The notes under the pieces were generated by a model that had not been told where the DNA came from, made no database searches, and saw only the letters and a program-made list of their open reading frames with translations. From NCBI GenBank assembly GCA_051530055.1, contig CM121342.1, positions 3,072,797 to 3,136,796 on the forward strand: 64,000 nt of DNA. Reading direction: 5' to 3'. Shown one piece after another: positions 6,801 through 47,264 of the stretch. The stretch comes from Neoechinorhynchus agilis (Eukaryota; Animalia; Acanthocephala). Both the position numbers and the translations under genes were made by a program. Numbering within the stretch: the stretch's first letter is position 1; each line of letters begins with the position of its first letter.

Positions 6801-8823
6801 TCAGCGGTTGTGACTAGGATGCTTCTTGAGATGTCTGTCCAGGTTTGTATGCTGTGCAAACTGTTTTTCACATCCGTGGCATTTATAAGGACGCTGATTT
6901 AGATGGATACTTCGGACATGGCGTTGGAGATTAGATGATATTGAGAATCGACGGCTACAGTGCTCACATTTGTATGGTTGTTCTCCGGTGTGTGTTCGTA
7001 AATGCCGTGTCAGATTATACCGTTGATTTTTCGAAAAGAAACCATTTCATGAAGAATCAACGGGTAGCTGAACGTGGAAACTGTTTGCTACAATGGGGGC
7101 ACTCGTGGATAGTTGATTGAGTTGGTATACCAGCATTACTTCGTCCTTGTAAGGCATTCGAATGGTTACTAGAAGGACTGGACGGATCCGGAACGTTGCC
7201 ATTTGAGATAGCTGGTTTCTTAAGCAGACTACAACTCATGGTATTTTTCCGTCGCTTACGGTTTTCGACTTCTGGTGGAACGGGCGGAATTGCGGCAGCA
7301 GTTTGAATATTGGCTATTTCTGAAGATGATCCAGATGAAGGATGACGATGTTGACTAAGATCAAGTGGCTGATCGTCAGTTCGCTTTGTATCTGTTGACT
7401 GTAGGTTGCTGCTATTGGTGGTGGTGGTGGGGATGTTTGCGTTTGCCATCGGTGTCGAATGGAACAGGTTGACTGATTGGAACGGATTCTGGACTCCAGC
7501 TTGTGCAACGAGATTAAGAACGATTTGACACATTCGATGGAATTCTCTGTAGTCATTGTGTTGCAGCATTAAAGGATTCCCAGCGAATCCGTTTGTGATA
7601 AAGGAGATTATGTTTTGATGGAACTGTGCCGCTTGGAGGTTCAGATGATGGGTTGGTGGCATGTAAGCGGTGGCCACTGGCGCCTGTTGTTGGCTTACAA
7701 CTACTGGATTTGGTGGGACTATGTGAATAAAAAATAGGTGAGAAGTGTTTTTCCAACGGCAAGAATAACAGGACGAACCTTGTTGATTTGTATGCTGAGC
7801 GATTGAAGTGCTATGTTTATTTTTGTGTTGTTGTTGTTCGACTAGATGAGTTCGTTTGTGTCGACAAAGGTTTGAAGGTTGTGTATAGGACTTATCGCAG
7901 ATCTAAAGGTTTTTTAGGGTTACAAAACGGCATCTCTGTTTCTCTTTAAGGCATTCTATGGTTGAACCGAGAGAGAGCAGGAATTGGATCATTTATAAAT
8001 GTCGTTGTGTGCACGCGTTGATCATTACCGCCACACTAAGAGAAACTCTTCATCTTTACTGGGAGTTGGAGTTACATGGCGGCACAGTAGTTGGACACCG
8101 CGCGGTAGCATCGGCGTGACAAAAAAGTGTGTGATGAACATCCCTTAATGGGTTCAACGAGCAGAACATCATGATCGTTTTCACGGCAAGAATGAGTGTT
8201 TGGCCTTGATGATGGGGAAAGCATAAGATGACTCGCATGCACATACACACAAAGACGTCCTATTATTCAGTTCAAAATGCTCCATTTAGATCTGGGGTGC
8301 TGCTCTAATGAATCATACAGGCGCCGACGATCCGTACAATTCCTAAAACCACCACCCCCGTACCGCTTCAAGGATAATGGAGTGAGCCAAAAGTAGTGGA
8401 AGGAGTCATTGCTCAAAAATAAAAAGGAAAAAAAACTGATTCGGTGTTGAGGAGACCCAATGAGTCACAAGCAAACACGAAGATGAGAAGAGTCACTCAC
8501 CTGACATGTATATGGCCGATTACTCTTGTGAACGTTCATGTGCTGCTTTAAACCCGATTGGGACGCAAAGCTCTTCGAACATATCTTACAATTGAACTTA
8601 GAATCCTTGACATACTCCTCGTTCAATGGAGCTACTGTTGAACTGTTCTCTTGTCTATTGTTATCGTCTTCATTAACCGTGGAACTCGTGACGCCCTGAA
8701 CACCATTAACTCCGGATTCGCCACTCGAAGCTGACTTTGTAGACTCGTCGTTGTTGTTGTTGTTGTTCATCCCAGTAGTTGTTATTTGATGTGAAGAGGA
8801 TGCTATGATCATTTCATCAACTG
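6801..8823 (-). CDS. MECOM: Evi1/MECOM/PRDM16 (hamlet/egl-43)-like C2H2 zinc-finger transcription factor; 5' exon(s) not resolved
   Basis: Exons encode [33 protein letters not shown]|[19 protein letters not shown] and a C-terminal cluster [14 protein letters not shown]^[66 protein letters not shown], matching the two Evi1-family finger clusters. GT-AG introns at about 7909-8500 and about 7724-7779; one non-canonical insertion at 7016-7066. Confidence 0.88.
7016..7066 (-). other. TA-bounded, inverted-repeat-ended exon insertion #1 (49 nt removed)
   Basis: Minus strand: TCA GC[TA] C CCGTTGATTCTTC...GAAAAATCAACGG TA [TA]AT CTG. Removal leaving one TA gives TCA GCT AAT CTG (S-A-N-L). There is no AG in the insert. 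Confidence 0.9.
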
Positions 8824-45200: not shown

Positions 45201-47264
45201 AAAGTTTTGAGAAACTGACCTATCAAACGTTCATCAATGTTATCAGACATGTGGACCTTCATAAAATGGCTATTCTTGTTCCAAAGAACATATCGCTGTT
45301 TCCAACGAAGGGAGAAAAACAGCAAATGTCTAGTACTATCGATATTTGGTGGATTTTACACGATGCAGGCCTTATGATTTTATGGCAATCAATCCTAAAA
45401 TGTAGATTATATATTGCTGGTAAGGGAATGGGTGTTAAATTACCCATTTTAAAAGCAAATATTCGCGGTTATATTCAATTAAATGTACCGTACTTAAAAG
45501 CCTTTCATCCATATTAAAAAAGTACAAATAACTATGCCGTTATTTTAACCAATTTTGACTTGTGGTGAAGATAATCACCCGGTTACTTTATTCTTTTGAA
45601 ATATTTCTCGAGGAAACCTCGTCCTCTCAATCTTTGTTAATAAAACACTTTAACAGTGATAAATATTTCAGAAGAATAAAGTGATTTTTAACCGGGTGAT
45701 TATCTTCACCACAAGTCAAAATTTAACATCCCGGTTTGGATTTTCTCGATATGATTTAAATCAATCATGTGTTTTTATCGAAAGTACTTTGATTTGGTCA
45801 GGGCGAAATACAATTCTGAAAAAGTCCAAAACATAGAGGAAAAAATATTAAATCATTTTTCTTTATTTCGCCCTGGCCAAAACAATTTATGGGTAACTTT
45901 TTACTATTTAAAAGTATTTTTGCTCTAAGATGCTCTATTAACTTTAATGAATCGTTTCATTGATGCGAAAAGTTTCTTACCATCATCGCTTGGAATTTCA
46001 TTTTTCGTGAGAAATCTGCTTCTAATAAACTTAAGAACATCGAAAAGGTTCTAAACCATTGCGACCAAATCCATCTTTGATCATTGCTCTAAAATAACTG
46101 TTCCGCGTACGTAATGAATTATTTTGTGGATCACTTCAAAAATATATTTAAAGCCTAGAAATTTCAATTTAATCAGTAGGTATACGCCTCCAGAAAATTC
46201 CATTAAGATTCGCCAATGGCTAAGAATAGGCGGACCACTTCCCAGCTTTGATTTATCCGTTACAATGCCTTTGCTAAAAGGATTTTACGTTCATTTTAGC
46301 TCACAAAAAATATTATTCGAATTGTTTGTAAGGCTAATTGTAAACTACGAAAACAAAGTTTATTACGGATAACCGATATTCATTTTCCTGGACACCGCAC
46401 CCGTCTTCACATTTGAAATTTTATCAGCATTCGACAAAGAATTTTTCTAGTTTTTAACTGAAACTTCTAAAGAAATCGGCAGTCTCTCGTTCCGTAACTG
46501 TGGTTATTGAGCATATTTTAGTCAGCTTTTAGACTTTTTTTGCTCGTTATCAATAAGCATTTATGGTTCAAGTGGGTTCATATAAAATTGATTTGAAAGA
46601 GAAAGGTTATTTACGTGGATCAATGTGTCAATAAGAAAAATTCGTCGATCATAAATTGCCTTTTGCAAATACTTTAAACAACTTATGAATGATTGCCCTA
46701 ACGGCTCACTTGATTAAGAAGCATAAAGTATGGAAAAACTGTCCAATTAGGATATTCAGCGTTGCTGAGAGTCACGGTGATGCTGTTCTTGCTAAGCAAT
46801 ACATTGAGAACTTCATGCAAACAATCAGAATACGGTACAGCAAGATCGAGGTCATAGTGATGGAATCTTCGGCGATATCAGCATACACTTGCCAGGATAA
46901 TACAATCAACGATCCATTAGAACCTACCGTTCTTGAAAATCTTAGAAAACAGCGACGTGCTTTATCCCGAGCAGCCATCGATTGTCAATTCACCTTTTCC
47001 CCTATCGAAGGCGGACTTACCAATCTGATTGGTCACAATTTAAGACAAGAATCAAAACGCAAAACCCATTCGGCTATGAGACTGAATGAAGCAATGAACA
47101 AGCACTCTGGCGATGCTTCCTTGATAATCGTCAACCTTCCTCCTACTCCCGAACAAACTAAAGACGATCATGCATTCATGAACTTTGTTGAAGTCTTGAC
47201 TCTCAATTTAGGACCTGTTCTACTTGTGCATGGATCAGGACGAGAACTGTTTACCTCAGTCTGA
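42262..47264 (+). CDS. kcc: K-Cl cotransporter, SLC12A4-7/KCC-like (about 1042 aa after removing two insertions)
   Basis: Motifs [102 protein letters not shown] and LLVHGSGRELFT. Segments 42262-44013, 44570-45382 and 46701-47264. The start codon is uncertain. Confidence 0.95.
44012..44569 (+). other. TA-bounded, inverted-repeat-ended exon insertion #4 (556 nt removed)
   Basis: GCA T[TA] A GATATCGATTTTCT...AGAAAATCGATATC A [TA] CAA GAC, with a perfect 14-bp TIR. The join gives NLACALQDILKAPSWRP. Confidence 0.88.
45381..46700 (+). other. TA-bounded, inverted-repeat-ended exon insertion #5 (1318 nt removed)
   Basis: ATT T[TA] T GGCAATCAATC...GAATGATTGCC C [TA] ACG GCT, with a 10/11-bp TIR. The join gives WWILHDAGLMILTAHLIKKHKVW. 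Confidence 0.9.
45551..45722. mobile_element. MITE-like element with about 35-bp TIRs, nested in KCC insertion #5
   Basis: AATTTTGACTTGTGGTGAAGATAATCACCCGGTTA ... TAACCGGGTGATTATCTTCACCACAAGTCAAAATT; a second IR pair TGGTCAGGGCGAAATA / TATTTCGCCCTGGCCA lies at about 45796-45878. Confidence 0.8.

Follow-up and report, generated by a model that had tools for sequence, protein, structure and literature searches.

TA-bounded, hairpin-ended insertions in conserved coding exons of the acanthocephalan Neoechinorhynchus agilis: candidate non-canonical introns

Introner elements of the dinoflagellate protist Amoebophrya, a host reported to be without U1 snRNA, carry a short direct repeat, terminal inverted repeats (TIRs) of variable sequence and non-canonical ends, and their splicing was validated by RNA-seq (PMC7789003). 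In euglenids two intron classes occur side by side, and the ends of the nonconventional class are paired by short inverted repeats located a few nucleotides inside the borders (PMC12501133, PMC11282704). Among animals, MITE-derived non-canonical introns are known from one lineage, Fritillaria and other tunicates (Henriet et al. 2019, as summarised in PMC11282704; PMC13326754); the introns of Fritillaria are about 95% non-canonical, mostly with AG-AC or AG-AT ends following an exonic TAC, and are handled by a modified U2 spliceosome. In Paramecium and Blepharisma, excision of the TA-bounded IESs is precise and takes place in the DNA of the somatic nucleus, the germline nucleus being silent, and the IES ends follow the consensus TAYAGYNR (10.1101/2022.05.02.489906). 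Classical Tc1/mariner-Stowaway MITEs duplicate a TA target, possess TIRs and have no coding capacity. Exon insertions of Tc1 in C. elegans and of Ds in maize are tolerated through mRNA processing, which uses cryptic GT-AG sites and is imprecise; tolerance through RNA processing is also what is proposed below for the insertions described here.

Interruption of genes in this way has hardly been described in animals, and a fixed TA repeat combined with a private hairpin and no shared ends is an architecture so far described in protists only. It was encountered in Neoechinorhynchus agilis (Acanthocephala), a fish-parasitic thorny-headed worm, in a part of chromosome CM121342.1 comprising 64,000 nucleotides (the whole stretch of DNA that was analysed, henceforth the window; Table 1). 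The five insertions listed in the initial annotation were all found again at their coordinates, as TA direct repeats with a TIR beginning 1–5 nt inside; the arrangement of TA and TIR held, except that the TIR of ins5 comprises 8 bp rather than 9 and that the gap between TA and TIR of ins1, read on the + strand, is 2 nt rather than 1. A sixth case (ins6), absent from that list, interrupts an HSD17B10-like gene 2–4 kb to the left of the window. The claim that conserved, otherwise intact animal coding sequence is interrupted, in essential genes among others, is supported, the pattern recurring in ins6.

Table 1. Features of the window. Positions are counted from the first nucleotide of the window; spans of inserts include both TAs; ends are given in gene orientation.
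Feature	Position	Strand	Description
Sulfotransferase gene introns	987-1030, 1315-2473, 2595-2631, 2920-2966 (span 987-2966)	+	Four ordinary GT-AG introns
Zinc-finger gene, last coding exon	6804-7017	-	Three C2H2 fingers, downstream of ins1; from ORF and junction peptide
ins1	7016-7066	-	51-nt span, 49 nt removed; within a run of C2H2 zinc-finger codons; TA-c-CCGTTGATT..AATCAACGG-ta-TA
Zinc-finger gene, middle exon	7065-7902	-	Upstream of ins1
Zinc-finger gene, intron	7903-8500	-	Ordinary GT-AG (GTGAGT...TTTAG), 598 nt; same gene as ins1
RPS12-like (L7Ae family) gene, intron	17157-17201	+	Ordinary GT-AG (GTTAGT..TTTTTAG), 45 nt
RPN1/PSMD2 exon 1	25940-27003	+	No canonical intron inside; aligns to PSMD2 residues 141-302
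ins2	27002-28002	+	1001-nt span, 999 nt removed; 13-bp TIR with one G.U; TA-gatga-GGATCGATGAGTG..CACTCATTGATCC-aa-TA; interior a 305-bp tandem repeat (2.2 copies)
RPN1/PSMD2 exon 2	28001-29210	+	From ORF and homology
ins3	29209-30420	+	1212-nt span, 1210 nt removed; imperfect 17/19-nt TIR (one A.C and a 2-nt bulge); TA-a-GTCAGCAAAACGTTCAC..GTGAACTCGTTTCGCTGAC-aa-TA; interior with a 169-bp hairpin satellite, further copies at 18594-18999, 49856-50368 and 56253-57066
RPN1/PSMD2 exon 3	30419-31088	+	From ORF and homology
KCC (SLC12A4-7-like) exon 1	42181-44013	+	611 codons, intron-free
ins4	44012-44569	+	558-nt span, 556 nt removed; perfect 14-bp TIR; TA-a-GATATCGATTTTCT..AGAAAATCGATATC-a-TA
KCC exon 2	44568-45382	+	From homology
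ins5	45381-46700	+	1320-nt span, 1318 nt removed; 8-bp TIR; TA-t-GGCAATCA..TGATTGCC-c-TA; nested foldback MITE at 45551-45746, related to 17352-17407
KCC exon 3	46699-47264	+	From homology
Intergenic TA-flanked MITE-like element	59885-60377		25-nt TIR directly abutting TA
Similar TA-flanked elements	60478-60586, 62183-62465, 24389-25670		

TA..TA boundaries with near-terminal pairing were present in 6/6 homology-defined interruptions, the inserts ranging from 49 nt to 1.8 kb and the stems from 8 to 19 bp. The end-to-end pairing energy of each of ins1–ins5 fell within the lowest 0–0.4% of 2,425 random TA..TA pairs from the same window, and counts of perfect stems against equally spaced TA pairs also indicated non-randomness for ins1, ins4 and ins5; a chance origin of the layout is excluded by these pairing statistics. 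Folding of ins1 with its flanks as RNA gave -18.9 kcal/mol (z = -3.9). Of the four imperfections in the stems, two (in ins2 and ins6) are G.U when read in the sense strand, an argument which is not significant with six inserts, one mismatch being A.C in that strand.

The inserts agree with Tc1/mariner-Stowaway MITEs in their TA target-site duplication, their TIRs and the lack of an ORF, and they look old, with imperfect TIRs, a nested MITE and satellite arrays. TA-duplicating TIR elements do live in the N. agilis genome, as the intergenic TA-flanked elements of the window demonstrate. However, classical TIRs and those of the intergenic copies begin at the TA, whereas in none of the six exon-borne inserts does the TIR start directly at the duplication, 1–5 unpaired nucleotides intervening in every case. 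The TIR sequences are all different, and no second copy of the termini of ins1–ins5, such as the multicopy shared termini of this MITE type would lead one to expect, was detected in the window or elsewhere in the 73 kb searched. Since the TIRs are unrelated and private, the inserts share a structure and not a transposase-binding sequence.

For homology checks the exon pieces were searched separately, and the proposed identities of RPN1 (PSMD2) and KCC (SLC12A4-7) were borne out. Removal of the insert together with one TA yielded the junction peptides anticipated in the initial annotation. In the case of ins1 a perfect C-x2-C-x12-H-x3-H zinc finger resulted. The junction of ins3 is exact to the residue, exon 2 ending at residue 706 of human PSMD2 and exon 3 beginning at 707. 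The KCC pieces align to residues 124–606, 607–880 and 881–1086 of a related acanthocephalan KCC, with none missing or added, and by this measure the ins4 and ins5 junctions are exact as well; the yardstick is an mRNA-like contig from another acanthocephalan, with 64% identity, and says nothing about processing in N. agilis. The ins6 junction was likewise residue-exact. Since ins2 lies in a variable loop, its exact junction is not fixed by homology, and the earlier claim stands there only for the frame and the approximate spacing. Overall, the alignments support the view that protein conservation is restored solely by taking out the insert and one TA. The exons of the proteasome subunit and ion transporter genes are long intact ORFs (1.1, 1.2, 0.67, 1.8, 0.8 and 0.56 kb); together with the old-looking inserts, this indicates that the insert-bearing genes have remained under selection.

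Ends of the types GT-AG, GC-AG or AT-AC were found in none of the three TA registers of ins1–ins5, in agreement with what had been noted for GT-AG and AT-AC. The AT..AC pairs present within +-12 nt are without the ATATCC consensus and alter conserved residues or introduce stops. Removal must therefore be exact at the duplicated TA, as the inserts offer no normal intron signals. Ordinary GT-AG introns are nevertheless present in the interrupted zinc-finger gene and in neighbouring genes (Table 1; the sulfotransferase model is 93% identical to NCBI protein ACOME3_005282), which argues against the inserts being an artefact of shifted annotation. In rotifers, the KCC genes contain 12 and 22 GT-AG introns, but the sites of ins4 and ins5 are not among the intron positions; the inserts are thus new insertions and not degenerate old introns. 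Two further candidates were rejected. For self-splicing or ribozyme-flanked introns (group I, group II, hammerhead, HDV, twister and others) no RNA family model matched, an Rfam gathering scan of the window giving one tRNA only and permissive scans of the insert regions only sub-threshold hairpin matches. A tRNA-type bulge-helix-bulge consists of two 3-nt bulges on opposite strands, a 4-bp helix between them and exon-exon pairing outside; folds of the insert ends with their flanks showed TA:TA, an internal loop and an intron-only stem, with exon-exon pairing varying between cases.

In their architecture the inserts are closer to the introner elements of Amoebophrya and the nonconventional introns of euglenids than to the introns of Fritillaria, and to speak of a new system, as had been done, was an overstatement, since the same architecture is known from Amoebophrya (PMC7789003) and euglenids (PMC12501133, PMC11282704), and MITE-derived introns from tunicates. 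As in Amoebophrya, a short direct repeat overlaps both boundaries, so that the exact position of the cut cannot be placed, and an inverted repeat pairs the intron ends (8–20 nt there, 8–19 bp here); common terminal dinucleotides and a family-specific inverted-repeat sequence are missing, a MITE-like origin is indicated, and canonical introns coexist. The direct repeat is variable and of 3–5 nt in Amoebophrya, but of 2 nt and always TA here; the present host is an animal with strict GT-AG introns nearby; and splicing, which was seen by RNA-seq in the protist, is inferred in N. agilis. The euglenid introns share with the inserts, besides the features mentioned above, repeats resembling target-site duplications, pyrimidine|purine borders (with which T|A is compatible), lengths from tens to thousands of nucleotides and the lack of a polypyrimidine/AG signal. 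They differ in their code: the Euglena motif N3-CDG ... CH'G-N5-6|R is absent from the inserts, whose positions +4 to +6 read CCG, ATG, GTC, GAT, GGC and AAA; in addition, the 3' spacer is of 5–6 nt there and of 1–2 nt plus TA here, and the stems are longer here. Fritillaria borealis offers the only animal precedent for transposon insertions with target-site duplications and TIRs that function as non-GT-AG introns; their positions are lineage-specific, and the genome is depleted of introns (Henriet et al. 2019, as summarised in PMC11282704; PMC13326754). Its signature, however, was hardly found: AG..AT ends occur in ins2 only, in one register, and an exonic TAC precedes none of the inserts; moreover, canonical introns of N. 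agilis remain common and conventional. Paramecium and Blepharisma IESs agree with the inserts in having TA at both ends, one of which is kept, in a transposon or MITE origin and in the interruption of coding sequence (10.1101/2022.05.02.489906), and boundaries of the Paramecium type with one TA left are present here. TAYAGYNR, sought in 12 ends (TACCCGTT, TAGATGAG, TAAGTCAG, TAAGATAT, TATGGCAA, TAAAAACG and the right ends as reverse complements), fitted none. The inserts fit the sequence signature of none of the described classes of non-canonical introns, a point against the reading that follows.

We consider it reasonably probable that the inserts are old, TA-duplicating MITE-like insertions which act as non-canonical introns, juxtaposed at their ends by a hairpin and removed from RNA. 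Non-autonomous DNA transposons of the Tc1/mariner-Stowaway-like MITE type would have entered coding exons of an acanthocephalan genome poor in introns, duplicating the TA target, and would have persisted because the cell removes them exactly. Transcription would read through the insert; the paired TIRs would place both copies of TA side by side; the RNA would be cleaved at matching points within or beside the two TAs and its ends joined, so that a single TA and the original reading frame remain. A second, non-canonical class of introns would then exist alongside normal GT-AG introns. As to the machinery, we lean slightly towards a route independent of normal 5' and 3' splice-site recognition, as has been proposed for euglenids, over a relaxed U2 spliceosome as in Fritillaria, since the ends have only TA in common, show two-fold symmetry, and are found next to canonical introns which are strictly GT..AG. 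By published BUSCO values, the transcriptome is more complete than the genome (54.9% vs 47.1% with the metazoan set, 71.0% vs 58.4% with the eukaryotic set), which fits interruptions hidden from gene finders and absent from mRNAs. Should transcripts confirm removal from RNA, Acanthocephala would join the tunicates as a second, independent lineage of animals that neutralise exon transposons by non-GT-AG removal. Two intron classes side by side in an animal whose genome is tractable and small (16-Mb chromosome) would offer a new system for the long-open question of how nonconventional introns of the euglenid kind are recognised and cut.

The initial annotation had considered IESs and structure-defined introns alike. 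As in ciliates, inserts present in the germline might be cut precisely from DNA at TA, by a domesticated transposase and end joining, in nuclei that are somatic or active in transcription, germ cells being supplied otherwise or repairing their RNA as well. Symmetric, TA-bounded, precise excision with one TA kept is exactly the product expected of such a DNA pathway; the two-fold symmetric ends, the transposon-like origin and the sizes of 49 nt–1.8 kb agree with it, and the BUSCO values fit equally well. Yet the germ cells of an animal depend on their own genome for the expression of housekeeping genes, and PSMD2, HSD17B10, KCC and similar genes would be required in their nuclei; ciliates escape this problem only because their germline nucleus is silent. 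This favours repair at the level of RNA and renders DNA excision unlikely. Furthermore, the insert-bearing form was assembled at 6/6 sites from DNA of whole worms, most of it somatic and embryonic; the consensus was fitted by 0/12 ends; a PiggyMac-type pathway does not need maintained end pairing of unrelated sequences; and a literature search found no precise intragenic DNA elimination in animals.

Cryptic canonical splicing, in which nearby GT-AG sites are used as with Tc1 and Ds and slightly altered proteins are tolerated, is unlikely too, if anything a little more so. An in-frame GTAAGT..TTTAG pair around ins4 was used by BRAKER and is assumed in the NCBI model of KCC, and for ins2 and ins5 numerous in-frame GT/GC-AG combinations are available within +-150 nt; but the ins4 alternative drops about 30 conserved residues of a transmembrane region which are kept in acanthocephalan and rotifer homologues, ins1 is without an in-frame canonical pair within +-150 nt and ins3 without a canonical pair within +-12 nt, and at four sites a gap-free alignment was obtained from the TA junction only. 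Recent knock-out insertions or pseudogene copies, with functional copies elsewhere, are improbable. The DNA came from a pool of worms with haplotypes purged, MITE-like elements are plentiful, and at least one indel error is probable in the assembly; against this, four genes in 73 kb carry six insertions, PSMD2 and KCC having two apiece, each exon is still a long, intact ORF, the inserts have an aged appearance, and protein searches with KCC and the sulfotransferase gave only the models of this locus for N. agilis. An artefact of the hybrid ONT/Illumina assembly, or ribosomal bypassing as known for short hairpin inserts in yeast mitochondria and phage T4, is hardly credible, since the former would not produce TA duplications and private inverted repeats at codon-preserving positions six times, and the latter, applicable in principle to the 49-nt ins1, is impossible for stop-rich inserts of 0.5–1.8 kb.

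Junctions of this type are invisible to BRAKER and BUSCO-type tools, and some of the "gene loss" deduced for acanthocephalans from low BUSCO values (47% of the metazoan orthologues being found in the genome) may thus be an artefact of annotation; any list of drug targets in these fish parasites that draws on such models would carry the errors over. In public annotation the KCC, zinc-finger and HSD17B10-like genes are truncated, split or wrongly spliced, and PSMD2 is probably affected likewise. The NCBI zinc-finger model stops at ins1 (window position 7057). In KCC, the GTAAGT..TTTAG intron imposed at ins4 deletes the conserved residues mentioned above, and the annotation enters ins5, the gene being split into models of 907 and 191 amino acids.

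Neoechinorhynchus agilis is a thorny-headed worm (Acanthocephala) with mullets as hosts. Exon 1 of the KCC gene (SLC12A4-7-like) was 100% identical to the N. agilis protein ACOME3_005291 of NCBI, and the gene is located on chromosome record CM121342.1 (16.4 Mb; assembly GCA_051530055.1). Whole worms were pooled for this assembly, which combines ONT, HiFi and Illumina reads; its annotation was made with BRAKER and was supported by RNA-seq. Each of the five inserts which the initial annotation had placed in the genes for a zinc-finger protein, PSMD2 (there named RPN1) and KCC was confirmed at its position. 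Their layout in gene orientation is TA, 1–5 unpaired nucleotides, one arm of a stem, the interior, the arm complementary to the first, 1–2 unpaired nucleotides and TA. Coordinates and stems are compiled in the table.

Inserts, candidates and other features of the region (L005 and L006 are additional DNA stretches with their own numbering)
Feature	Stretch	Coordinates	Strand	Details
Insert 1, zinc-finger gene	window	7016-7066		stem 9 bp
Insert 2, PSMD2	window	27002-28002		stem 13 bp, one G.U
Insert 3, PSMD2	window	29209-30420		stem 17/19 nt, one A.C and 2-nt bulge
Insert 4, KCC	window	44012-44569		stem 14 bp
Insert 5, KCC	window	45381-46700		stem 8 bp
Insert 6, HSD17B10-like gene	L005	5357-7169	-	CM121342.1, ~2.3-4.1 kb left of window position 1
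SRPRB-like gene interruption	L005	1436-1812	+	~377 nt, left of window
Hairpin MITE nested in SRPRB-like interruption	L005	~1645-1790
Intergenic TA-flanked elements	window	24389-25670, 59885-60377, 60478-60586, 62183-62465		long TIRs touching TA
Hairpin satellite	window	18594-18999, 29753-30264 (within insert 3), 49856-50368, 56253-57066		~170 bp, arms up to 57 nt
Big tandem arrays	window	3197-5205, 31437-33144, 52658-54548, 62958-64000		periods 91, 51/101, 396, 350 bp
Tandem array	L005	~7750-9700		period roughly 155 bp, estimated from repeated-ORF spacing rather than Tandem Repeats Finder
Kelch-like gene	window	23082-21834	-
Rejected candidate in Kelch-like gene	window	22284-22418		133-nt TA..TA, 7-bp stem touching TAs
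tRNA-Gln (CTG)	window	34769-34841	-
PSMD5 (Proteasom_PSMB) match	L005	2973-4169	-	intact 399-codon ORF
Frame shift in CIR N-terminal domain gene	L006	~10229-10250
Perfect (GGN)n / (CCN)n tract	L006	~11170-11450		~280 nt

For testing the junctions, the gene pieces on either side of an insert were searched separately. PSMD2 exon 2 was found to end at residue 706 of human PSMD2 and exon 3 to start at residue 707 (insert 3). The yardstick for KCC was a 1087-aa protein of a different acanthocephalan, 64% identical, from an mRNA-like Logan contig (run SRR19345920); the three KCC pieces correspond to its residues 124–606, 607–880 and 881–1086, with no residue lost or gained at inserts 4 and 5. Removal of insert 1 yields a perfect C2H2 finger. 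The restoration of the frame by taking out an insert plus one TA, as originally proposed, is thus exact for inserts 3 to 5 and gives the finger for insert 1, while insert 2 is situated in an acidic, variable loop, for which frame and spacing agree and homology does not pin the exact junction.

Canonical ends are absent, in agreement with the initial annotation: in none of the three registers of the TA repeat would an insert be bounded by GT-AG, GC-AG or AT-AC, and no in-frame canonical splice pair was found within 150 nt around insert 1. Ordinary introns do occur in the window. Four (44, 1159, 37 and 47 nt) are present in a sulfotransferase gene, one (45 nt) in an RPS12-like gene and one (598 nt) in the zinc-finger gene, in the same transcript as insert 1; all six start with GT in a consensus-like hexamer of the GTNAGT type and end with AG, mostly preceded by a T- or A/T-rich run. 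Homology searches revealed no paralogues of the sulfotransferase, and its hand-built protein had no exact database record. PSMD2 and KCC of N. agilis contain no canonical introns. The KCC genes of rotifers possess 12 (Brachionus) and 22 (Adineta) GT-AG introns, none at the positions of inserts 4 and 5; therefore, N. agilis has lost ancestral introns, and the TA inserts are newcomers in exons.

The automatic gene models reflect these interruptions. Around insert 4, the NCBI model of KCC uses a GT-AG intron which deletes about 30 conserved residues, then runs into insert 5 and stops, the last exon being annotated as a separate gene of 191 aa; the end of the zinc-finger model coincides with insert 1. 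In total, four genes (PSMD2 probably among them) in ~83 kb, i.e., the window and ~19 kb leftward, reached via annotated neighbours, were mis-modelled owing to such inserts. The extension provided one more verified case, insert 6, which splits a HSD17B10-like short-chain dehydrogenase with 1,811 nt between the halves (NCBI model truncated, 128 aa). In the alignment to rat HADH2, the first half reaches residue 110 and the second starts at 111; the ends of the insert are TA-aa-AACGGATAATCTCGT .. ACGAGATAATCTGTT-a-TA, including one G.U and one A.A. The interruption of the SRPRB-like gene permits only a weak GC-AG reading (GCCACC..TTTTTAAG) and is without a clean GT-AG, TA repeat or TIR; it may belong to the TA/TIR class as a diverged member, or be an interruption of a third kind.

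Only homology-anchored cases were counted as inserts; a blind scan for ORF-joining TA..stem..TA pairs gave 204 hits at stems of 7–8 bp, which were chiefly due to chance. The candidate in the Kelch-like gene was rejected, its pairing being ordinary (9% of background); a 76-nt GTAAGC..AG intron is an in-frame canonical alternative, with no homologues to choose by.

The end-pairing energy of each of inserts 1 to 5 was in the lowest 0–0.4% of 2,425 random TA..TA pairs from the same repeat-rich window. Five such pairings jointly cannot be chance. Four of these inserts have G:C as the outermost pair of the stem, and one has C:G. A 71-nt RNA of the insert 1 region folded with −18.9 kcal/mol (z = −3.9); in the folds, exon-exon pairing beyond the TA was present for insert 1 and inconsistent among the others. 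The termini had no second copy within the window, unlike the interiors, which contain common repeats: a 305-bp tandem repeat in insert 2, a 169-bp hairpin satellite common to three intergenic sites in insert 3, and a nested foldback MITE in insert 5. Between the TA and the G:C-closed stem, at least one unpaired nucleotide was present in every exon-borne insert, compared to none in intergenic copies. This may be a recognition feature, although it is a lead only, since the cases number six and the scan is prone to ambiguity.

Non-autonomous elements of the Tc1/mariner type are recognised by a 2-bp TA duplication together with TIRs and the lack of an ORF, and such an origin is indicated for the inserts; taking out the insert and one TA would bring back the empty site. 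Since the TIRs are imperfect and the repeats nested, the inserts appear to be old. Old inserts, together with long intact ORFs in conserved essential genes, imply that the genes must function with the inserts present, and the conserved proteins are obtained by exact removal only.

Removal would more likely take place at the RNA than at the DNA level. The germ cells of an animal depend on their own genome for the expression of proteasomal and mitochondrial housekeeping genes, and DNA from whole worms was assembled as the insert-bearing form at all six sites. Moreover, pairing between unrelated sequences is needed for juxtaposition in RNA and not by a transposase. The Paramecium consensus TAYAGYNR, the Euglena N3-CDG code and the sequence definition of canonical introns all fail for the inserts. 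Their general design, a short direct repeat combined with a private inverted repeat and without common ends, is matched by the introner elements of Amoebophrya, for which RNA splicing has been proven (PMC7789003), and the nonconventional introns of euglenids are a close parallel (PMC12501133, PMC11282704); both likenesses also argue for RNA. Indirect support comes from the published BUSCO completeness, which was higher for the transcriptome than for the genome (metazoa, 54.9% vs 47.1%; eukaryota, 71.0% vs 58.4%), as would be expected if mRNAs were free of interruptions which gene finders cannot span. The N. agilis entries retrieved from protein collections were genome-derived models only, with no transcript or insert-free form among them.

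As for the RNA route, we lean, with low confidence, to one other than ordinary splice-site recognition. The insert ends are two-fold symmetric, with TA as the sole common feature; cuts at equivalent points in the two TAs, which could pair together, would leave a single TA in any register. A relaxed spliceosome in the style of Fritillaria may act instead. The inserts fail the sequence definition of the AG-AC/AG-AT introns of that animal. Features of bulge-helix-bulge, group I/II or ribozyme-type introns were not found in the inserts, and readings of these kinds were dropped, as was an IRE1-type reading.

For Acanthocephala, neither DNA elimination nor non-canonical introns turned up in full-text literature searches, and the two N. 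agilis genome papers make no mention of introns. The "new system" of the initial annotation would represent, in a new animal lineage, a general design already known from Amoebophrya; for a categorical novelty, removal would have to take place at the DNA level. Part of the reported "gene loss" of acanthocephalans may be due to unmodelled interruptions.

Tandem arrays occupy much of the intergenic space in an otherwise compact genome. The first of the intergenic TA-flanked elements (1.28 kb) has perfect 15-bp TIRs abutting the TA repeats and a reverse-transcriptase fragment inside; 270 nt separate its end from the start codon of PSMD2 downstream. The tRNA-Gln was the sole Rfam or ARAGORN match in the window. 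The ORF with the PSMD5 match is missing from the NCBI genes at its locus. In the CIR N-terminal domain gene, whose NCBI model stops at 102 aa, the conserved frame shifts inside ~20 nt, too short a stretch to hold an intron; the probable cause is an indel error of 1 nt in the hybrid assembly, or else a real frameshift. The (GGN)n / (CCN)n tract would encode poly-Gly or poly-Pro in several frames.
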